Origin: Rhodosorus marinus CCMP1338
Taxonomy: Eukaryota; Plantae; Rhodophyta
Assembly (NCBI GenBank): GCA_029953675.1
Contig: JAMWBK010000001.1
Span: forward strand, 186,001-250,000
Reading direction: 5' to 3'
Length of the DNA: 64,000 nucleotides
Position 1 is the first letter of the stretch. Each line of letters opens with the position of its first letter. This document shows positions 38,056 through 54,225 of this stretch, one piece after another. The translations under genes were made by a program, and so were the position numbers. The notes under the pieces are model-generated. The model saw nothing but the letters and a program-made list of their open reading frames with translations. It searched no databases and was not told the origin of the DNA.

Positions 38056-38985
38056 CTAATGCAGAAGCTTTTTCAGAATGGAAGTTCTACCCAGTTTGTG
38101 AGAGTACGTATCGATGTACTGGACGATGTTGCCCATTCCAATCTTGTGCAGCACCTTAAGTGGCGCCAGCAGAACACGGGAGAGAAGGAACGGTAGAGCA
38201 TCCGTAGTACTTGATGCGACCACGCCGTCCACGACAATTCTGTCATTCATCGTATGGATGTTGCGTACGGGAAGTCGTACATTCAGAATCTTCGTTACCA
38301 CCGCCGCGGTAGCCTCCGATTCAGTTTCTGGCACAACGAAAATTTTGGACCCCGCCTTGATCGACTTGGCTGGGACAAACGCATCCTTGTCCTTTGCGAC
38401 TCTCAGCAAGTGAGTGTTGGAGAGCGTAATAGCTCCAGATGCCTTGCCGTCGAGAGTGTTGAAATGGATCTGCCTGAGTCTCCTGACCGCAGTTTGTTTT
38501 CCGTGCTGAATCAAGAAAACTTCGGAGAAGGTTCGGCGACCTCGTGAGTCAACGGATTCAACCATATCTCCGACTCGAACTTCGTCGACGGCTTTCATCT
38601 GTCCGTCGGCCATCTTCACAGTGGAGAATGCGGAGAAGCAGATATCGTCATCGCAGAAGAGCTTGATGTAGATGTTGTTCCCGACCTGGTAGCAAAAGTC
38701 CTCTTGGGCTGTCTCATCGAGTACCTGAACTCCGTTGCAACTATCACTGTTCCAAGCCTGAATGCTTCCTTCAGGTTCCCCGTCCTGGCAAATGGCTCTC
38801 ACACCAATGTCGTTGAAGGTGTTATCAACGTCCAAGTCAACGCAATCGCCGTTGTCACCGTCCTCGCACTCCTCGCCGTCATCACAGGTTGAATTGGTGT
38901 ACGAGCAGATATCAAAGTCTTCCGCAAAAGCCACTAGGCTGAGTCCGCAGAGGATCAGCACAAGAATTGTAACCCAAACCTTCAT
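38056..38985 (-). CDS. Secreted Hog/Hint-domain precursor 1 (signal peptide + 8-Cys module + Hint + SRR-like tail)
   Basis: Single exon. Signal peptide; Hint starts at C116 (DDDI|CFSAFSTV) and contains VRVGDMV, TLSNTH and NIHTMNDRIVVDGVVASS. Amphipathic tail LLAPLKVLHKIG. Confidence 0.92.
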   Translation of the reverse strand: MKVWVTILVLILCGLSLVAFAEDFDICSYTNSTCDDGEECEDGDNGDCVDLDVDNTFNDIGVRAICQDGEPEGSIQAWNSDSCNGVQVLDETAQEDFCYQVGNNIYIKLFCDDDICFSAFSTVKMADGQMKAVDEVRVGDMVESVDSRGRRTFSEVFLIQHGKQTAVRRLRQIHFNTLDGKASGAITLSNTHLLRVAKDKDAFVPAKSIKAGSKIFVVPETESEATAAVVTKILNVRLPVRNIHTMNDRIVVDGVVASSTTDALPFLLSRVLLAPLKVLHKIGMGNIVQYIDTYSHKLGRTSILKKLLH

Positions 38986-41900
38986 TTTTCACAACCAAGA
39001 AGCTTGACAAAAAAAACAACGTCCTCCTTCAACAGCGAAGATCCGAGGCTTTCCTCAGCTGGCTCCCACCAACCATCGCTTGCAAATGCGGTGCCTTCAT
39101 ATAACCTACCAAATGGGCCGATCTCTTGATCGAACTGCACTACATGATCCGCGAATCCCCAACCACAAAAAAATCACCTTAATCCCCCTGCAGGTCCAAT
39201 GTCTTAGTCCTTTTCCCGCCCTGACCAATCAGTCCTGAAAGAAACCCAATCATTGTCAAATGTCCCGTATCACGTAATATCGCTACCCCCAACTTGCCTC
39301 CACCAGATTTTGAAAAACCTTATGACATCCTGCAAAACCCGGTATCCAAGTTAACCCCCCCTACCAAAGTAGGCCCCTCAATCGAGAACTAATTTGAAAC
39401 CTTAGAGATACCTGAAAACAACAATCTCCTCAGCGCTTCTCCCCCCCCGCCCCCCTTCTTAGAAAATATGAAGCTCCCCGTCACCAAGAGCCATGTCGAG
39501 TCCACCCCATTGCAATCCGCCAAAAAGAATGATAGCGCAAGTCCGTGATTTTTTTCAATGCAAAAGTTCTTACGGTTTAGCTGAAATCGAAATCTCCCCC
39601 CCCTGACTCTGATCAACACTTTTAAACACAATCTCAAAACGATTCAAACGGAATCTACACCCCTGTTAAAAATATGAAGAAAATCACCAGTAGTTTCCTT
39701 CATTTTCCGACGGGGGCGGGGGTCTTACGGCGTCTCTTTTTTCTGTAGTTTTTGACTGGAATGTGCGGATTCGAATGAAATGTCAGTATGATTTTTGCGA
39801 TGATCGCGAAAATATTGGAACAAAAAAACACCAAAAAACAAAAATGCTTGGCTTTCTGTCTACGTGGTTGGATCAGTAGACTATTTGATTTCAATGTCTC
39901 TATAGACAATGAGAAAATTCGACCTGAGTGAGCATGTATGTATATCAAACATCACGCGCACTTGGACTTTTTTTGAAAATAATTCGATTTGTCCGGGGTT
40001 GTGTATGCAGAACAAAAACAACTTTTGTCCAAAATCGTGCTGTACTCATATGCGTGTGGTATATATGATATGAGGTGGAGCGGAGATGAGATATAGTAGG
40101 ACGTTACGCTGGAAGCATATCTTTGCGTTTGCTTTTGGATGGGAAAACACCCCTGTGTTGCACATAGCAACCGATGGGTGGGGTTTGTGAAACCTATGTA
40201 GAGAGTAGATCTAGTAGATTTTGGGGGGACCTAGTGTCATGGCGCTCTTTTCTTTCCGCGGGGTTCAGACCACCAGCGCTGGAGTAGAAGTCTACGACCT
40301 AGTGGTTTTTCAGTCTAGACAGCATTTGAATGTTTTTGCTTTGCATTCCCGTCGAAGAACCTAATTTCAAGAATGCACCTTGTTTGGCTCGATTGAGAGT
40401 AGAAAAGGATTGTGTGAGAGCTTGGCTCCCCCCTTTCTTGTTTAGTGGACGGGAGCGACGAGTTTGGTATCATGGTAAACCCTGCAGTCTTTAACTCGCG
40501 ACCCACTCGGCGTAATCGAAACGGTTTCTTCGGCGAGTAAAGTGGTTCTGAAGAGCCTAAATATCTCACTCTGGAATCCAGGTTCAGTTCGACGCCGACG
40601 ATAGCGGAAGAGGCTGAGCTGATTTGGCAACTTGGCTCGGGGGACGAGCGAGCCCCAAAATCGCCCGATTTTAGCTCTTCGTGGAAAGGGAATTATTTGA
40701 CGCTTGTTGCTTACAAGCGTCAAATAATTCCCTTACCAGCGGGCCATAAAGTCACCCCCTTGCTTACTCTAGGGGCTCCAATTCAGTTGTCACGCGTAAC
40801 CTAAATATGCCATCAGTCGTTCTCACAGCGCTGTAGACGGCTACAACACGAACTCACGTCCACTACCGGCCTATTTTCTTTCCCAAATGAATAATCTCCA
40901 TCTCTTTCGTTTTGGCCATCAGTAGCAAACCTTTCTAGATACCAACACTCTAACGAATCGGATATTACATGCCTCGCTTCCTCCCAGCCCTGCCTATTAG
41001 CAACCACGATTCTATGGTATTTATCAACCCCTAAAATCAGGCTTCCGATAATGACAGGCTGTCCCTGCTCGAGCTTTCAGTAAGCGGGCTTCGCTTACTG
41101 TTTATCCTCTACAGTATAGTGTAGCTGCTCTACCTACGACACTTATATGATAAGGGGGGTTGCTCGGCTATAAATGGGGTCCCAACGCCAATTAAATATC
41201 TGGTATCGATACCTTCGTGTTTGCTTCGTGTTTGCTCCTGGTTTTTGAAAGAAGACCTGCATTGTTGTCTTGCAGTCACTCCCCGCACCTCAACCTGCTC
41301 GACAGCGTTCAACAACAACGACAAGACTCTGTGACTTTCCTCGTTCTAAACTCGAGGCACACATCTAGATTATGAGAGAAAAAAGAAGAACTGTCCATTC
41401 ATTGGCTGATCGCAGTAGCATCGAATTATTTTTGAATTACTACTCGAATCTCCCCCCGGCGACCTGCTTATGGTACGCAAGCAAGATTTTCACGTCAGAG
41501 ACTGGCTGCGTAGCTGCGCACAACACAGCGGTCCTAGACGTTTGTCCTGTATATGCGTTGAAGTGGTTAAGGATGCGCCCCGGAGTACGGGCAAAACTTC
41601 GTTGGACGTCGACCGAAGGCTCGCGAGCAGATTCTTTCCGCTGGGGCTCGCAAGCCGACTGAAACTGAGTACTTTTCACAGCCTTAGACTGTTGTTCTAC
41701 TTATCCGGTTTCTACTGTCCCTATGACAACTGCGTGATCCACTCCTTTTAGACGACTTAGGTATTTCCGTCCGCAGCTGTGGTTTACCAGTCTCACAGAA
41801 ACCTTGTGATGGGTGCGTGCCCTCGTGGACAAGTTTTTGGTGATAGCCCAAGGCTCCCCGGAGAAGAAAAGCAATGGATCCGGTTTCGTTTGTCGAGGGT

Positions 41901-42300
41901 TATGCATGACGAGATTGCTCCTCAGCACCCCGTGAACAGTCATTCCGTGAAGATGACGATTAATCACGCCTCCCTGGGTAATCCTGTAGTTTGACTTGCA
42001 GCGGGCAAATAAGATAGTTTCCATTCGTCACCCCAGCTTCCCAGTTTGGACTTCGGCCCAACGAATCAACCATGTACTAGCACGCAATAGTGATACGAAG
42101 CTGCATAGCGCAGGCAGACTCAAAATGTCGGCGATTTGGAGCACTCGCAGCAGAGGTCACTCAGTGCACGTGGTATGTAAAGAGCGATGGCGTAATGTCA
42201 AAAAGGAGCAACAGGTGGTTCCTTCGTTTTACATGTGCTATTTCGTATAGGCAAAGAAAACAACTGGCTTTTCGGTTCGAAGGCCGCATCCTAGCCCGCG

Positions 42301-43248
42301 CTACAAACTGGACAAGATCTTCCTCCCAGTAGAAGTCTTGGCCAGCTTGTGTGCATACGCATCAAAAGAAGTCACGACCTCGTGTAGTCCGATCTTGTAC
42401 AGGAGCTTAAGTGGCGCTAGGAGTAGTCGAGCAACGGAGAAGGGCACGAGTTCCGTCGTGCTTGATGCGACAACTCCATCAACCACAATTCGGTCGTTCA
42501 TAGTATGGATGTTGCGCACGGGATGTCGTACGGAAGAAACCTCCGTCACCAGCGCTTCGGTGGCCTCCAACTCGTCCTGCACGACGACAAATATGGTCGA
42601 TCCCTTCTCGATTGTCTTGGCAGGGACGAAAGTATCTTCCTCTTTCGCTTTCCTCAGCATGTGAGCTCCTGAAAGCGTGATCGCTCCAGAACCCTTACCG
42701 TCAACTGTACTGTAGTGAATCCGCCTGAGTGTCGTCGCGGAAACCTTTCCTTCATGTTGAATTAAGTACACTTCGGAGAATGTCCTCCGACCCCGGGAGT
42801 CAACAGATTCGACCGAGTCCCCTACTTTCACGTCTTGCACGCTCTTCGTTTCTCCATCGGACAGCCGGACAGACGAGTACGCAGAGAAGCAGATATCCTC
42901 CTGACACTCAAACCGTATGGCGAAATTCGTGGCGCCGACCGGGTTGACGACGGAGCAAGTATCATCCGCAATAGCATCAGCATCTGGCGTTCCACTGCAG
43001 TTGGTTTCTGAGAAAAGGCCGAGCAAGCCTGAGGCGTTTTCCGATTCAGTGCATGCGCCTATTGCACCATACTGTTCACTCGTACCGTCAACTGATACTG
43101 TTAGACACGAGCCGTTGTCGCCCTCCTCGCACTGCTCGCCTGAGCTACAAGAAGTATCCGTGTACGTGCAAACTTTGACACTCACTCCGTACGCGGTCAG
43201 ACTGAGCCCAAGAAACACTAACATAAGAGTCACCCCCTTAATCTTCAT
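42301..43248 (-). CDS. Secreted Hog/Hint-domain precursor 2 (paralogue of 38056-38985)
   Basis: Single exon with the same layout. Hint starts at C120 (QEDI|CFSAYSSV) and contains VKVGDSV, TLSGAH and NIHTMNDRIVVDGVVASS. Confidence 0.92.
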   Translation of the reverse strand: MKIKGVTLMLVFLGLSLTAYGVSVKVCTYTDTSCSSGEQCEEGDNGSCLTVSVDGTSEQYGAIGACTESENASGLLGLFSETNCSGTPDADAIADDTCSVVNPVGATNFAIRFECQEDICFSAYSSVRLSDGETKSVQDVKVGDSVESVDSRGRRTFSEVYLIQHEGKVSATTLRRIHYSTVDGKGSGAITLSGAHMLRKAKEEDTFVPAKTIEKGSTIFVVVQDELEATEALVTEVSSVRHPVRNIHTMNDRIVVDGVVASSTTELVPFSVARLLLAPLKLLYKIGLHEVVTSFDAYAHKLAKTSTGRKILSSL

Positions 43249-44477
43249 CTTTCTAGATAGGACGAGAGTATTCTTCTTCTTGCACTTGTGACCTAAGAAC
43301 TCCCTCCCTGGTGGCCAGTAGGCAATACCAGCAGAAATCCAAATCTGCTCCGCCGTTGACCCACAAGCCGGACCCCCCAGGGGCTAAATATATACGCACT
43401 AGCAAAGGATCTGAAGGGAATCGGACTTCAGTAGAATGATCTTGCCACCTCATCTACAGGTGCATCTCAGACAGCCTCCATCAAAATCAAAAAAAAGGAC
43501 GAATCTATTTGACAATATCTCCACGAAAATGTGTGTCACCAAGAAAAAGAAAGATGAAGTTAGTACACGTCATCAACCAAGAGATATATCCACCAGATAT
43601 TGTTACTCATGCGATGATAACATGACGCGGGAGCGACAATCTCACCACCCCGAAGAGATCTACAACAACATAGCATCTAAAACAACCAGGATCGACATCG
43701 GGAAGGAGAAGTCCTTCCATAAAAATATATAGTACGATCTTCAAAATTAAGGAATAAAGCGACAGCCTGTCTTTTCTTTGAAAAGAATGTGAGAACCTCC
43801 CCTACTTTACAACCTTGTATAGGCAAAACCGATTAGATTCAGATCATACTTTCCATTTTTGCTCAGCCGGAAGGGGTGTGATGTGAGAACGAAAAAACGA
43901 GGCCGAACGCAGATTACAAGGTTGCACCCGGGATTTTAGGTCAGAACGTTAAGCGTATCTTTAACGATTCTAGTGGACATACACGACAGAAACAGGAGGA
44001 TAGGGATTATTCCTTTGGAAAAGAAAATAGTCCGATATTGGACGGATGGTTCGAAGTTGATACATATATACATATAATTCTAAAAGAGGTAATAAGTAGG
44101 TTATTTTCGGGAGGCCTGCAGGCAAGTGTCTCCCTCAATTGTCCCAAGAATTATGTACAAAATTTGAATGAAAACTCAATGAATAAAAAAAATTAGATAT
44201 AGAAATATAGAAATTCATACCCTGTTTGATGATTCCATTCTAAAATTAACCGTTATACCGGCCCCTGCTAGGATTGAGATGGAGCAGGAGGGCCGGGGGG
44301 GGGGGGTGGAATTTTTACAGAGTCTCGTATCTATTGTAAAATGATTGAAATTTGGACAATATCATTTTCTCTTTCGAGGATTTAGGGTGATCGTTTCTGA
44401 GCAGGGTGTAAGTTTGGGGGTTGGTGTGTGGGGTGTGTCCTCGTTCATTATCTCGGAGGCTGAATATGGGGAAGTAG

Positions 44478-49336: not shown

Positions 49337-52300
49337 ATGTCTGGTCTTGGTGGTTCGTCGGACTCCGGGGTAGACACCCGGGAGCTGAACTTTTTGATCT
49401 TACATTCTCTGCTAAATGGTCCATGCGAGAAGAGCGCAAGAGAGCTAATGCGGGAAATGCAGGAGAAGAAGTTGCTTCCGTCGCAATATGATTGGAACGG
49501 AGACACTTCCTACCCGAGCTATTCGCAGCTTAGCAGGAAGTTCTCGCGTCTACCTCCAGACTACCTCCGCTCTTTGCTGAATGAGGTCCTCACCCAAGAC
49601 CAACTAAGGAGCAACTCGCTGCTCAATATTGGCAACGCCCCGAACAGTGAAGAGCTGCGCAGGAGAAAGCTTATAGAGCGAAGGAAGCGACCCCGAAGCT
49701 GCTTACAACTACTGCGGCAGAGAGCTGAGAGAGGAAAAAGAATGCCAATATCGATGTGGTCACCTGAAGATCTCTACAAGAACTTTCGAAAATTGAAGAC
49801 ATTGCGCGGTCATTCTGCTCCTGTGTACAGCGTTTCCTTTGATAGAGAGTCGCGGTTTATTGTCACGGGTTCCGATGATCACCTTCTCAAGGTGTGGTCC
49901 GCCGATACGGCCTACTTACGTCATTCTTTACGCGGCCATGAGAAGGACATTACGGCACTCGCCTTTCACCCTGAGAATACAATGATCGTTTCAGCGAGTA
50001 ACGATGGAACGCTCAGGGCGTGGGATCTGCGAAGCGGGGCTGAAATCGCGGTTCTGAAAGGCCACAGGAAGGCTGTATTGTGTGTAGCGTTCAGCCCGTG
50101 TCCTGACCGACCATATGTGCTGTCTGGGGCTGGTGACGGTACTTGCAGACTGTGGAATTCTGATGATTTTTCAATTGGTAAGTCCCAAACGTTAAGAATA
50201 TGTTACTCCGCGTTTCATGTGATTGATGAGAGCCTTAACTCTGTCCTCGTACAATAGGGAGCGTAACCATAGAGTTCCCACCTAAACGGTTTAAGCGGTC
50301 GCGCGGCCGGCATCATCCGCCTGATGATTTTGCTCACGCTGAGTCCCACGCGACTCCTGGGTTTGAGTCAAACACGCTGGGGTCACATGTCCAGGGCGCA
50401 AACAGTACGGTCAGCGGATCTCAATTGATTAGCATAGAGATCCTAAGCGTAAACTTCAACCCTGGCGGAACTCGGTTCGTGGTTGGTGGTACGGACTGTA
50501 CTGCGTACGTTTGCCAAGTACTTCCCAGAAGCCCGCCAAGAAAACCAGAGGTGAAACATCTCGCAACCCTCCGTGGTCACTCCGGGTTTCCCTACAAAGT
50601 TTCTTTCTCGCACCTTGGCGACAAAATCTGCACGGGGAGCAGCGACGGCACTGCGAGAGTTTGGAGTCGAGCTCGGTGTCCGGATGGGCCAAGTTCTCGA
50701 ACTCCTCGATCGAAGAAGGTTACGTCGACGTGGGCATCCATAGTGCTGAATGTCAGGGTGGCAACAACACTCAGTAACAACAGTGTCCCGGAACCACCTG
50801 CGGGAACGTCCTCAACTGTTGGTCGCATTCGTCGGCATTTCGGTAATCCGGAGGTTACTGCTGTGGTCTGGACGATTGACGACAAGAGGCTAGTAACTTC
50901 GTGCAGTGACAACCTGATTCGTGTCTGGGACGCGAACAACGGCCAGCTCATTCACAGTCTTGATTTCCACAAGAACCAAGTGTTTGTCCTTGACTCACAT
51001 CCGTTGGACAAGCGCATTCTTCTTTCAGGATCCTACGACGGAAAGTGTGTGCTTTGGGATATAGAGAAAGGAACAACTTTGCACGTTTTCGACCCGCCTG
51101 ATGATTCATCGGAGGACGTAGTCGGGAAGCGAATGGTTGTCGATGGAAGGTGGGCACCGAACGGGTTGATCTTTGCTATATCAGACGATAAGGGTTGCAT
51201 GTCGATGTACAGTATAGGTGACGGAGAGCAAACGAAGCAGGCACCAGAGCAGCAGTTTTTCATGAAGGACTATGCAGGGTTAGCGCATGATCAGCGAGGG
51301 AATACCCTCGACGAGCAGCTGCGCGTACCTCCGCACCGAATTCCTCAGGGACCTCTGTGCGATGCGTACATGATCCCACACCCGCCATCTCAACAACCTA
51401 TACGCTTCGTCAAGCCAGGGAGTTACAACTTTTCCAGCAGTCCTAGGAGTGCGTCCACGATGAGAGCTGAGCTGATCGCGAGAGCTGAGGCTTTTCGCCG
51501 CCGAGAAGTCGAGGAGGAAAAACGACTCGCGAGGGAGGCTTACTTCTACGGAAGAGAACGTACTCCTGCGGAGGCATTGTTACGCGCCCGGAGAGAGAGG
51601 GAGGAACTAGAGTCTGGTAGCTACTCCGCACCGCGTAGTACATTATCACGGCCTGAGGACGGGGACTTGTCCATGGCAGCTTTGGATACTTTTGAAAACC
51701 CGGAGGATTCGCATTCAGAACCTGAAAATGATGCAGAGTGGAGCTTAAGGGATATCAACCGTAGCAATGCAGCCGGCGCTATGACAAGCGAGAACCAACA
51801 AGTCGTAAGCGAGGGAGATACTGCGCTGCGCAGCGAGCGCAGGGAGGGCGAAGATTCTCAGACTCGATCCCTAGCTGCTCAAGACTCGGTTACGGCAAAC
51901 GAAATGGAGACCCCAAGTCCGCTTGTCCAGAGCAACCCACATGGTGCTGTTGAGTTGCGTTCTCGTCGGTTCCGACAGTACGTCCATGATGGTACTGCAC
52001 TAAGGAACGCGGAGATGGATTCTGCTAGCGCATTTCGAAGGTCGAAGTCACTTGAGGATGCCAGGACGGAGGTACAGGACTCTTTTGCTATGGAAGGAAC
52101 CAGAGTGGAGCAGATGTCTTCAATTGCGTTCCTGCGGGAGGATCAGAGATCTGTTGCTGCTACCGAAAGCATCGGACAATCGCATGAACAGGGATCGATA
52201 GCGGCCTCGGAGAGCGTTGGAAAATCGGAAGCAGCGGAGGCCAGGAGGGGACACATCGTGCAAGGCAGCGGGGTTGTTTATGACCAGCACTCACGGAGAA

Positions 52301-54225
52301 CCTTTAGCTCGCGATCTGGTTCTGAATCACCAACCAGTGCAAAACTTGAAGATGGCAGGGGAAGTGGAATACCTAGAAAACGTCAGAGGCGTACGCAAGA
52401 GGGGGCGAACTCGCCTAGCGGAACGAGGATGGTGGAACGGAATGAGCCAAAGAACGTTGGCACCATCACAAAACGCAACCGTCGGCGATCAGAGCGGGCA
52501 AACAGAAGCAATGCAGGAGTTGGTCGAGTCAGTCTCGGGTTAGAAATAGGCTCTGGGAAACTTAAGCCAACGCAGTATATTGAGAGGAAGCGGGATGTGG
52601 TTCCTGAACGTTTCTTGCTGGAAACGATACCGCTCAGCGCTTCAGAGTGGTTGCTTTGCACGGATGCAAATGAAGGAGAGTACGTCCCGCAGGTTGGCGA
52701 TCGAGTTGTGTACTTTCCACAAGGGCACCAGAGCTTGGTTGAGGCAGAGATCGAAAATGGTATTTGGAACCCGGATGCTGCGAACACGTCGATTCCGAAG
52801 TCTAGAGATGGCGAGCCTTCGGTGTTTGAGGTCATCCGAATTGAGTATAAGATCACTCAATGTATTTTCACCGTTGATCGGGAGAAAAAACAGAGTCTTT
52901 GGGACGATGTTAGGAACGTTGCAAGACTTTTCCTCAAGCGTGTTGACGGTGAGTAGCACTGAGACTTCGAGAAGCGAGACCTTGATTAGATTTAAGCGTT
53001 AATCAATATCTTTTCGATTCTATTTATTTCTTTGATTCAGCAGGAAAGGAAGACAGCGAACTGTACCTTCTGAATTACTATCCTGTTGACTCTGTACCTG
53101 AGTATGTTGTTCTCGAATCCAGAGTTTCATCCTCAAAGTCGAAGACCTGGAAAATCGGAGAGAAGTTCCGAATGTTGTTCATGGACGAAAAGCGGACTGG
53201 GGTGTTCTACACTGGCCGAATTGTCAACCTTTCACCTGATATGGAGTCTCGGCCGTGGAATAGTATTGAGGTCCAGTGGGAATCGGAGAACGACCCGGAC
53301 CGTGGTGCCAGAATGTTCGTCAGCCCATGGGAGTTGGAACCGATCGATGGTGGAGAACAGCCATCACCAGTATCTGAGAATGGCAGACGTGGTGAGTTTC
53401 GGAGGACTAGGGGACCCCTTTAAAGCTCGAACAAAGGTGTTGAACCCGCTTTTGTTGTTCTTGTTCCTTTACAGTGCGTCACCTCTCTAACAGAATTGTA
53501 TCAGCGGTTACACATCAACTCGAGGCGAACGAAGCTTTTCGCGTGCTAGCGTCCCCGCTGATTGTACCTGTGCAGGAGCTGGCGAAGAAGGTTGGGTATA
53601 CAAATCTAATTCCTTGCCCATTGGTATGGCACTTCACATATACATCTTGTTGCGACCTTCGTTTGGGCCACACGCTAACTGCCAGCACCTTCATTTTCCC
53701 CCTCCGCAGACGTTAAGTACCTGGCTTGGCCGATTGAAGAACCATTTCTACAGACAGGAAAGCGCGATTGTGGAAGATTTGAATCTGCTCCGAGCAAACA
53801 CTGTTGCGTATAGCCCATACGATGGTGAATCCGCTGCACGGATGACTGAAACCAGTAAGTGGCTGGTACAGGCTGTGAATAAGTGCCGAGCTGAAGGCCG
53901 CCAACAGAAAAGGACTCTGGATACCAAGAGCACCGAAGGCGCTGGTGGCTACAACGCCTGTACTAGCGCCAACAACGAAGGACAAATACAAGCTCTGCCT
54001 CATGGATCGCCTTCGGTGAATCACGAGACAGATAGCACGATGCCCCCTCCAACCGACGTACGAGCTACGCTGCACCACGAGAACAGCGTCATCTCTGGTG
54101 CCGCAGCCGAGAGTACAATTAGCTACGGGGGCACAAAAACAGTGGGGGGTGCAACGGAAAGCGGTGAGGAAGAAATCTGGCCGGGTGTTGTTCATCAGTC
54201 AAGAAATCGCGTCGGCAAGAAATGA
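49337..54225 (+). CDS. BRWD/PHIP-like protein (WD40 propeller, cryptic Tudor, single divergent bromodomain)
   Basis: N-terminal ELNFLI...LLPSQYDWNG...YSQL...LPPDYL, multiple GH...WD repeats, PEQQFFMKDY, YVPQVGDRVVYFPQGH, SPWELEP and a bromodomain-like RLKNHFYRQ...EDLNLLRANT. Confidence 0.92.

Follow-up and report, generated by a model that had tools for sequence, protein, structure and literature searches.

A tandem pair of putative Hog precursors carrying an eight-cysteine module in the red alga Rhodosorus marinus

To our knowledge, protein cholesterylation has so far been demonstrated only for animal Hedgehog. Hog domains are also found outside animals, and have been described in the red algae Chondrus, Porphyra, Gracilaria and Griffithsia, as well as in mosses, alveolates, jakobids and others (Bürglin 2008, PMC2362128). 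In that survey the regions upstream of the red algal Hog domains were examined and no matches were found, while a Cys-to-Ser change in motif J was reported for red algal and moss Hog (PMC2362128). Since then, lineage-specific N-termini have been on record for red algal Hog proteins, and databases already label such proteins as Hint-domain-containing. Whether these non-animal domains attach anything, and what, is a question that has been standing since their description. Here we describe two genes, A and B, that form a tandem pair in nuclear DNA of the unicellular red alga Rhodosorus marinus CCMP1338 (Stylonematophyceae). They lie in a stretch of 64,000 nucleotides, referred to below as the window (contig JAMWBK010000001.1, positions 186,001 to 250,000). 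The reading we favor, with a probability of roughly 55%, is that both encode secreted Hog precursors that would cleave themselves before a Cys-Phe pair, leaving a small Cys-rich cargo sterylated and tethered to the cell surface.

Two precursors and their Hog domains

Both genes are on the reverse strand. Their features are as follows, with positions counted from the first letter of the window.

38056..38985 (-): gene A, complete intronless coding sequence (CDS), 309 amino acids (aa) plus stop (open reading frame (ORF) list; BLASTP, 52% identity to B; transcript contig L002)
38923..38985 (-): A predicted signal peptide, aa 1-21, MKVWVTILVLILCGLSLVAFA followed by E (by inspection)
38641..38922 (-): A N-terminal module (N-module, the cargo), aa 22-115, 26 acidic and 2 basic residues, 8 Cys (Cys map; 88-bit match to the module hidden Markov model, HMM)
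38059..38640 (-): A Hog domain, aa 116-309, with Cys116 (38638-38640), His161 (38503-38505), Ser189/His192 (His at 38410-38412) and the adduct-recognition region (ARR) tail, aa 262-309 (PF01079; ungapped alignment to B)
42301..43248 (-): gene B, complete intronless CDS, 315 aa plus stop, Hog-type precursor (ORF list; database protein match; transcript contig L001)
43183..43248 (-): B predicted signal peptide, aa 1-22, MKIKGVTLMLVFLGLSLTAYG followed by V (by inspection; helix 3-16, low confidence in the full-length model)
42892..43182 (-): B N-module (the cargo), aa 23-119, acidic, 8 Cys, seven predicted beta strands and two [YFW]x4C half-repeats (Cys map, AlphaFold2 (AF2), profile matches, half-repeat test)
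42454..42891 (-): B Hint core, aa 120-265, with the putative nucleophile Cys120 (42889-42891) and His165 (42754-42756) at the position of Hedgehog Asp46 (PF01079, HMMER, Foldseek, invariant columns)
within 42454..42891 (-): B Hint core motifs, Ser193/His196 of TxxH (His at 42661-42663) and motif J, aa 249-265, with Ser263 replacing Hedgehog Cys143
42304..42453 (-): B tail, aa 266-315, resembling an ARR or sterol-recognition region (SRR), with predicted helices 270-285, 289-303 and 306-314 and motif K, LAPLK (AF2; alignment to Hedgehog)

Each precursor is made of an N-terminal hydrophobic leader, an acidic eight-Cys module of about 95 aa, a Hint region, and a basic tail of about 50 residues. 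The isoelectric point (pI) is 4.05 for both N-modules and 8.7-10 for the Hog parts. Signal peptides were called by inspection from an MK start and a hydrophobic core of 14-16 residues followed by A-x-G or A-x-A, and hydrophobic segments are present at the N-terminus throughout the family. The two proteins are 52% identical over their full length, and BLASTP aligns their C-terminal 194-196 residues without gaps at an offset of four residues. The product of gene B is a 100% match to a database protein, the next closest sequence being an MMETSP transcript of R. marinus (81%), and gene A clusters with an NCBI protein and R. marinus transcripts under the UniRef label “Hedgehog protein Hint domain-containing protein.” Two transcript contigs from a diverged R. 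marinus strain match the locus, L001 for B (74% identity over 2.8 kb that include B and its flanks) and L002 for the gene A region (89.5%). That these contigs are collinear with the window across the whole CDSs supports A and B being intronless, orthologous to L002 and L001, respectively, and expressed; the MMETSP data of R. marinus contain full-length transcripts for both orthologues. The two intronless paralogues that a first-pass annotation of this DNA had proposed, with their leaders, acidic modules, Hint domains and tails, are confirmed at the stated coordinates.

The C-terminal part of both proteins is, judging from its sequence and modeled fold, a full Hog domain that comprises Hint and the adduct-recognition helices. 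It matches PF01079 with 64.5 bits in A and 63.7 bits in B (cutoff 29.7) over model positions 8-183 of 213, and the best sequence matches in the PDB are entries for the Drosophila Hedgehog C-terminal domain (Hh-C), by HMMER alignment to 6td6, 6tyy and 1at0. The full-length AF2 model has a predicted local distance difference test score (pLDDT) of 82.5 and a predicted template modeling score (pTM) of 0.79. Foldseek superposes it on Drosophila Hh-C (6TYY, 1AT0) with template modeling (TM) scores of 0.86-0.87, a root-mean-square deviation of ~2.5 Å and 27% identity (6TYY, E=2.9e-10, TM 0.86; 1AT0, TM 0.87). Inteins, bacterial intein-like (BIL) domains and Vint domains rank below Hh-C. An intein has a C-terminal His-Asn followed by a C-extein nucleophile, whereas A and B stop ~50 residues past the Hint core, in a helical ARR, and have no C-extein.

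Conservation of single residues was read from the HMMER alignment and from family alignments of 13 members. Motif A, the Cys-Phe pair that starts the domain (C116 in A, C120 in B), is nearly invariant, and motif B (TxxH) reads SNTH in A and SGAH in B, with Ser or Thr at its first position and the His invariant in 13/13 members. Motif J, TMNDRIVVDGVVASS, aligns to Hedgehog TREGTIVVNSVAASC with a Ser in place of Cys143. Motif K, LAPLKLL, aligns to Hedgehog LAPMRLL and falls within a predicted helix-turn-helix tail (270-285, 289-303), where P279, K281 and G287 (B numbering) are nearly invariant. The amphipathic tail noticed at first thus does contain amphipathic helices (hydrophobic moments 0.39-0.46), but it is better described as the SRR/ARR-like helix-turn-helix of a complete Hog domain. 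At the position of Hedgehog Asp46 (D303), an invariant His is found in the family (His161 in A, His165 in B). The predicted scissile bonds are I115↓C116 in A and I119↓C120 in B, at the very Cys-Phe positions proposed in the first-pass annotation. An acidic run stands right before the X↓CF site in many non-animal Hog cargos (P0054, P0056, P0066, P0074, P0075, and both window proteins; for example DDDI↓CF, QEDI↓CF, EEEDDDDEI↓CF and DDDDDDDAV↓CF), and may be a shared feature of the linker.

The Hog alignment was used to search for further proteins and retrieved 48, which were pooled with the earlier members to give 52 sequences aligned at the general-base position (39 non-animal, 13 animal). This position is occupied by His in 39/39 non-animal Hog domains (P0054-P0094) and by Asp in 13/13 animal Hedgehogs; an N-x-H-T motif is seen in the former, where the latter have A-x-L-T. 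Residue -1 is variable in non-animal Hog and is Gly in all 11 animal Hedgehogs having the site; the equivalent of Cys143 is mostly non-Cys among the 39 and is Cys in the 13. The window proteins have Ile (-1), His (46) and Ser (143) at these three sites. Cys1, wherever the N-terminus is present, and the His of TxxH are retained across the 39 non-animal domains. A Drosophila Hh-C engineered to carry D303H (D46H) keeps its cholesterolysis activity and accepts more sterols (PMC9163320). The window proteins thus carry naturally the “general base swap” that was engineered in the fly domain, and the structure of the engineered D46H variant is the top Foldseek match to the window model. The native His at position 46 is thus compatible with transfer to a hydroxyl nucleophile, and hints at it.

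The replacement of Hedgehog Gly-1, Asp46 and Cys143 could be taken to mean that the Hint domains are catalytically dead relics, and that A and B are uncleaved two-domain secreted proteins. However, the same three replacements are seen across the 39 non-animal Hog domains, together with Cys1, the TxxH His and the position-46 His, and the dN/dS of the Hog parts is only 0.11-0.28. Inteins tolerate many residues at position -1. The D46H change, for its part, leaves Drosophila Hh-C active (PMC9163320), and we consider dead Hint domains highly improbable. From sequence and modeled structure, A and B are very probably autoprocessing Hog precursors. The first-pass view of A and B as red algal Hog/Hint precursors of the autoprocessing type, with a cargo rich in Cys and a cut site before Cys-Phe, holds up in that PF01079 is matched above threshold, Hh-C is the closest domain in both sequence and fold, and Cys1 and the TxxH His are invariant.

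The cargo module: distribution, kinship and divergence

In A, cysteines are found at positions 27, 34, 40, 48, 66, 83, 98 and 111, followed by Hint Cys116, and in B at 27, 34, 40, 48, 66, 84, 98 and 115, followed by Hint Cys120. The spacings are 7-6-8-18-17/18-15/14-13/17 (A/B), then 5 to the Hint Cys. The Cys map and the alignment confirm that both modules contain eight cysteines in near-identical spacing, plus GDNG. As a hallmark of the module, GDNG has a narrower reach: it is present in A and B but kept only in Rhodosorus and close relatives, and is not family-wide. The sole direct repeat shared by loci A and B at the DNA level is 60 nt long with 73% identity (38848-38907 and 43111-43170), and it codes for the best-conserved part of the cargo, C-x-Y-T-x-x-x-C...GDNG.

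Neither A nor B has a PF01085 (Hedge) match in Pfam, as whole proteins or as isolated modules, and the isolated modules match no Pfam family (best E 0.27). A profile built solely from Hog-linked modules, searched against 1.84 billion representative proteins, gave 37 proteins at E of 1e-3 or better. The Hog-linked matches come from Porphyridium purpureum, P. aerugineum, Compsopogon caeruleus, Purpureofilum apyrenoidigerum and Bangiopsis. The module + Hog architecture is thus found in Porphyridiophyceae, Compsopogonophyceae and Stylonematophyceae, in at least six genera, so the module is no orphan. The number of copies before Hog varies from one to three among species. There are two modules in Purpureofilum (P0006, P0013, Purpureofilum-like) and three in P. 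aerugineum (P0023), where Pro/Thr-rich linkers are also found, while in P. purpureum an identical protein (P0014) is encoded at two loci (KAA8490380.1 and KAA8496808.1). Another contig encodes a third Hog paralogue of Rhodosorus, the hypothetical protein NDN08_007667 (P0059/P0057, 338 aa); its 146-residue N-terminus is unrelated and gives no match with the module HMM.

Six cysteines make up the shared core (C34, C48, C66, C84, C98 and C115 in B), to which Hog-linked modules add C27 and C40. The two halves of the module align in register (E=7e-4), and a [YFW]x4C pattern is found ahead of the first core Cys in 14/16 first halves and 16/16 second halves of Hog-linked modules. The AF2 model of the module, made with a 26-sequence alignment, has seven strands (pLDDT 88.2, pTM 0.79). 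Its comparison by Foldseek with the PDB yielded nothing significant (best E 0.74, TM ≤0.38), and no significant match was found among the viral folds of BFVD. A MiAMP1/beta-gamma-crystallin fold, like other known folds, was set aside for the cargo on these searches. A homologue search with the 26-sequence alignment, limited by its word index, returned P0037 alone, a protein on metagenomic contigs.

The Hog-less matches to the module profile are repeat proteins of protists, with library-wide E from 1e-9 to 1e-4. Most of them end either in a hydrophobic tail resembling a glycosylphosphatidylinositol (GPI) signal (P0018, P0019, P0024, P0030, P0037, P0043) or in a single transmembrane helix (P0038, P0041). 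Seven pass Pfam cutoffs, either for PF11912, the CfaA_B_C family formerly called DUF3430 (P0016, P0024, P0026, P0032, P0043), or for PF12131/DUF3586 (P0030, P0033); their E with the module profile is 6e-9 to 1e-3. In a control with composition-matched shuffles, z was 8-19 and the best domains scored 15-37 bits vs at most 10 for the shuffles, which rules out composition bias as the source of the Hog-less matches. The DUF3430 signature combines a signal peptide with eight or more conserved Cys and a repeated Y/FxxxxC, and the family includes the bacteriolytic Bad proteins of Dictyostelium, for which a MiAMP1-like Greek-key beta-barrel fold has been proposed (PMC7886984). Signal peptide, eight Cys and repeated aromatic-x4-Cys are all found in the window proteins. 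Taken together, the sequence evidence points to a probable distant kinship of the cargo with the extracellular Cys-rich CfaA_B_C/DUF3430 and DUF3586 repeats of protists. Bacterial-type repeat proteins (P0012, P0042, P0034) also score well with the module HMM (P0012 with z=21 over shuffles), a resemblance to bacterial HYR_4C that reflects either a beta module whose Cys pattern arose convergently or homology of a very remote kind. Where the match is confined to the DCSG core, as in large repeat proteins of bacterial and other origin (P0011, P0012, P0017, P0020, P0021, P0042 and others), it probably reflects convergence, and these proteins were left aside.

Between A and B, the N-modules share 35% identity vs 67% for the Hint cores, in line with the strong divergence of the one and the similarity of the other noticed at first. 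The identical stretch reported in the Hint domains is real and longer than noted, extending over 23 aa, PVRNIHTMNDRIVVDGVVASSTT. Within this block, 11 of the 23 codons differ synonymously, which rules out gene conversion and indicates that the block is held by selection on the protein. Between the paralogues, synonymous divergence (dS) is saturated (>1.7 or undefined), so the duplication is old, earlier than the strain split, and the paralogue dN/dS (nonsynonymous over synonymous divergence) is uninformative. Rates were thus estimated by the Nei-Gojobori method on orthologue pairs, the window vs the MMETSP strain, with two sequences per orthologue. In gene A, dN is 0.067 and dN/dS 0.12 for the cargo, and 0.033 and 0.11 for Hog. 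This difference is not significant (p=0.10 on dN, 0.24 on the ratio of nonsynonymous to synonymous differences, nd:sd), and the dN/dS of the cargo is clearly below 1 (p=2e-8). In gene B, dN is 0.231 and dN/dS 0.67 (bootstrap confidence interval 0.36-1.35) for the cargo, and 0.059 and 0.28 for Hog, a significant difference (Fisher p=1.3e-7 on dN, 0.013 on nd:sd). The Hog domains are under purifying selection. The faster divergence of the cargo that the first-pass annotation anticipated is thus seen in gene B but not in gene A.

These rates bear on the idea that the cargo is a fast-diversifying recognition or defence determinant under positive selection, and that the tandem pair stems from an arms race. 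The excess of cargo over Hog dN in gene B would suit it, as would the fact that neutrality is not rejected for this cargo (p=0.23), the clustering of its substitutions in the second half of the module, and the lower identity of the paralogous cargos. However, dN/dS is below 1 in every comparison, the cargo of A evolves like its Hog domain, and conservation covers all eight Cys as well as the first ~30 residues of the module. The duplication being old, both copies are also older than the strain split. An arms race is thus improbable. As to the ligand, recognition or defence family suggested in the first-pass annotation, no dN/dS exceeds 1, so that neither positive selection nor an arms race over a ligand or defence role is demonstrated.

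Proposed processing and its alternatives

A model for the processing of A and B can be proposed by comparison with Hedgehog. The signal peptide would be removed and the disulfides would form in the endoplasmic reticulum, after which the Hint module would carry out an N-to-S acyl shift at the Ile-Cys bond (115-116 in A, 119-120 in B). A nucleophile, positioned by the helix-turn-helix at the C-terminus and made reactive by the invariant His (His161 in A, His165 in B), would then resolve the resulting thioester. Red algae are strong cholesterol producers (PMC8172173), which is why the 3-OH of a sterol is the favored nucleophile. What remains would be a ~10 kDa acidic beta-module containing four disulfides, whose ester-linked lipid would tether it to the matrix or to the outside of the cell membrane, while the basic Hog domain would be discarded after cleavage. 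Since the domain is a full Hog with an ARR, motif K and a His at the general-base position, a lipid-tethered product seems more likely than free release. Because the Hog-less relatives of the cargo carry GPI-like or transmembrane anchors, Hog may serve here as an alternative anchor, and this kinship makes membrane tethering a concrete prediction. That the cargo receives a sterol or another lipid is nonetheless put forward tentatively, at slightly less than even chances.

Several observations weigh against this model. In the literature, no experimental work on processing, cleavage or sterylation was found for non-animal Hog proteins. Residue -1 is Ile and not the Gly of Hedgehog, and the equivalent of Cys143 is Ser; a 2025 paper (PMC12054796), by its title, reportedly has C143 forming a branched intermediate, and the chemistry here may differ. 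The ARR is only ~50 residues long. As for the kinship of the cargo, the whole A protein reaches only 18.5 bits with PF11912 (E=0.002, cutoff 28.6) in a match that includes the signal peptide, and PF11912 matches neither the B protein nor the isolated modules; by Pfam's own criterion, the cargo is not a member of this family. Alignment by hhalign of the Hog-linked modules with a PF11912-positive family gives only 63% probability (E=7e-5, 38 columns). The module profile also picks up a bacterial repeat protein with HYR_4C, and convergence of Cys patterns may thus account for some of the signal.

The same catalytic evidence (PF01079, the Hh-C fold, Cys1 and the TxxH His) would equally serve a Hog domain that only cleaves, with water resolving the thioester to free a soluble, unmodified, disulfide-rich peptide acting as a diffusible ligand or defence peptide. 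The cargo is indeed small, acidic and disulfide-rich, the DUF3430-family protein BadA contributes to bacteriolysis in Dictyostelium (PMC7886984), and the adduct of non-Hedgehog Hog domains was left open by Bürglin, hence the neutral name ARR (Bürglin 2008, PMC2362128). On the other hand, simple hydrolysis would not need a conserved helix-turn-helix ARR, motif K or an invariant general-base His, and those relatives of the cargo that lack Hog are anchored to membranes, not soluble. A module with a pI of 4 is also unlike typical cationic antimicrobial peptides, and purified BadA did not lyse bacteria on its own (PMC7886984). A soluble peptide is therefore rather unlikely, and the lipid-tethered cargo remains the preferred reading. 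It can be extended into a broader scenario, in which early-branching red algae would use a native His-base Hog to esterify a cholesterol-type sterol onto a DUF3430-like surface module, as an ancient non-animal sterylation alternative to GPI. The His would then be ancestral and the Gly-1/Asp46/Cys143 triad of animals derived, but this larger scenario is doubtful at present.

Genomic setting and comparison with known systems

By tblastn, A and B are the only two copies within the window, and nothing in their flanking DNA is duplicated or shared. The neighboring genes are ordinary eukaryotic ones, encoding an R3H/RRM protein, a WD40/BRWD1-like protein, TCP-1 and an oxidoreductase. The BRWD1-like/WD40 protein is split over two adjacent ORFs on the forward strand (49337-50257 and 50425-52956), which suggests an intron or a frameshift, and therefore that the genes of this region are not all intronless. 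No Rfam families or tRNAs were found around the A/B locus. Downstream of gene B, positions 1337-2842 of L001 run ~1.5 kb beyond the stop codon of the B orthologue and are collinear with the window at 40750-42300 (minus strand, ~74% identity) without a convincing ORF. This extension could be a long 3′ untranslated region, read-through or a non-coding transcript; a coding gene was rejected there, because the 176-aa ORF called in it does not look like a coding one. Gene B lies between the two arms (40857-40902 and 43999-44044, 85% complementary) of a 46-nt inverted repeat, and the 34-nt core of one arm, searched in the window with up to 3 mismatches, matched its own arm alone. A near-perfect 26-nt hairpin is found just downstream, at 40682-40738.

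The value of this locus is comparative and evolutionary, since the two genes are ordinary members of a recognised class. What is new is an eight-Cys cargo shared before Hog across three red algal classes, in variable copy number, together with a probable kinship, read from sequence, between this cargo and anchored repeats of the CfaA_B_C/DUF3430 type, and a confidently predicted cargo model with no match in the PDB. The consistent general-base His in non-animal Hog domains is an incremental addition. With ~300 aa, no introns, expression and cholesterol-rich hosts, A, B and their relatives offer a compact test case for what such Hog domains attach.

The window proteins resemble CfaA_B_C/DUF3430 (PF11912) and DUF3586 (PF12131) in their signal peptide, their eight or more conserved Cys, their aromatic-x4-Cys repeats and an all-beta prediction. 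Unlike DUF3430, they stay below the Pfam cutoff, hhalign links them to the family at the 63% given above, and Foldseek does not recover the MiAMP1/beta-gamma-crystallin fold; no fusion of DUF3430 to Hog has been reported. With the nematode warthog, groundhog and quahog proteins they share the fusion of a family-specific Cys-containing cargo to Hog, the same cargo being also found elsewhere without Hog. However, the cargo is unrelated to those of the nematode Hedgehog-related proteins, and its Hog-less relatives are protist repeats, perhaps from other genomes, with GPI-like or transmembrane anchors. The likeness to animal Hh-C (1AT0, 6TYY) extends to the fold, Cys1-Phe, the TxxH His, an SRR-like helical tail with motif K, and a predicted secreted precursor, whereas the Hedge domain (PF01085) is missing, Ile replaces Gly at -1, His replaces Asp46, Ser replaces Cys143, and the tail is shorter. 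The closest resemblance in overall plan is to the non-animal Hog proteins of Bürglin, with a signal peptide, a short lineage-specific and often Cys-containing N-domain, and a Hog domain with motifs A, B, J and K, including the motif-J Ser. Unlike those red algal proteins, A and B carry an N-domain that is a defined eight-Cys module, present in one to three copies, common to three early-branching classes, and probably linkable to a wider family of protist repeats.

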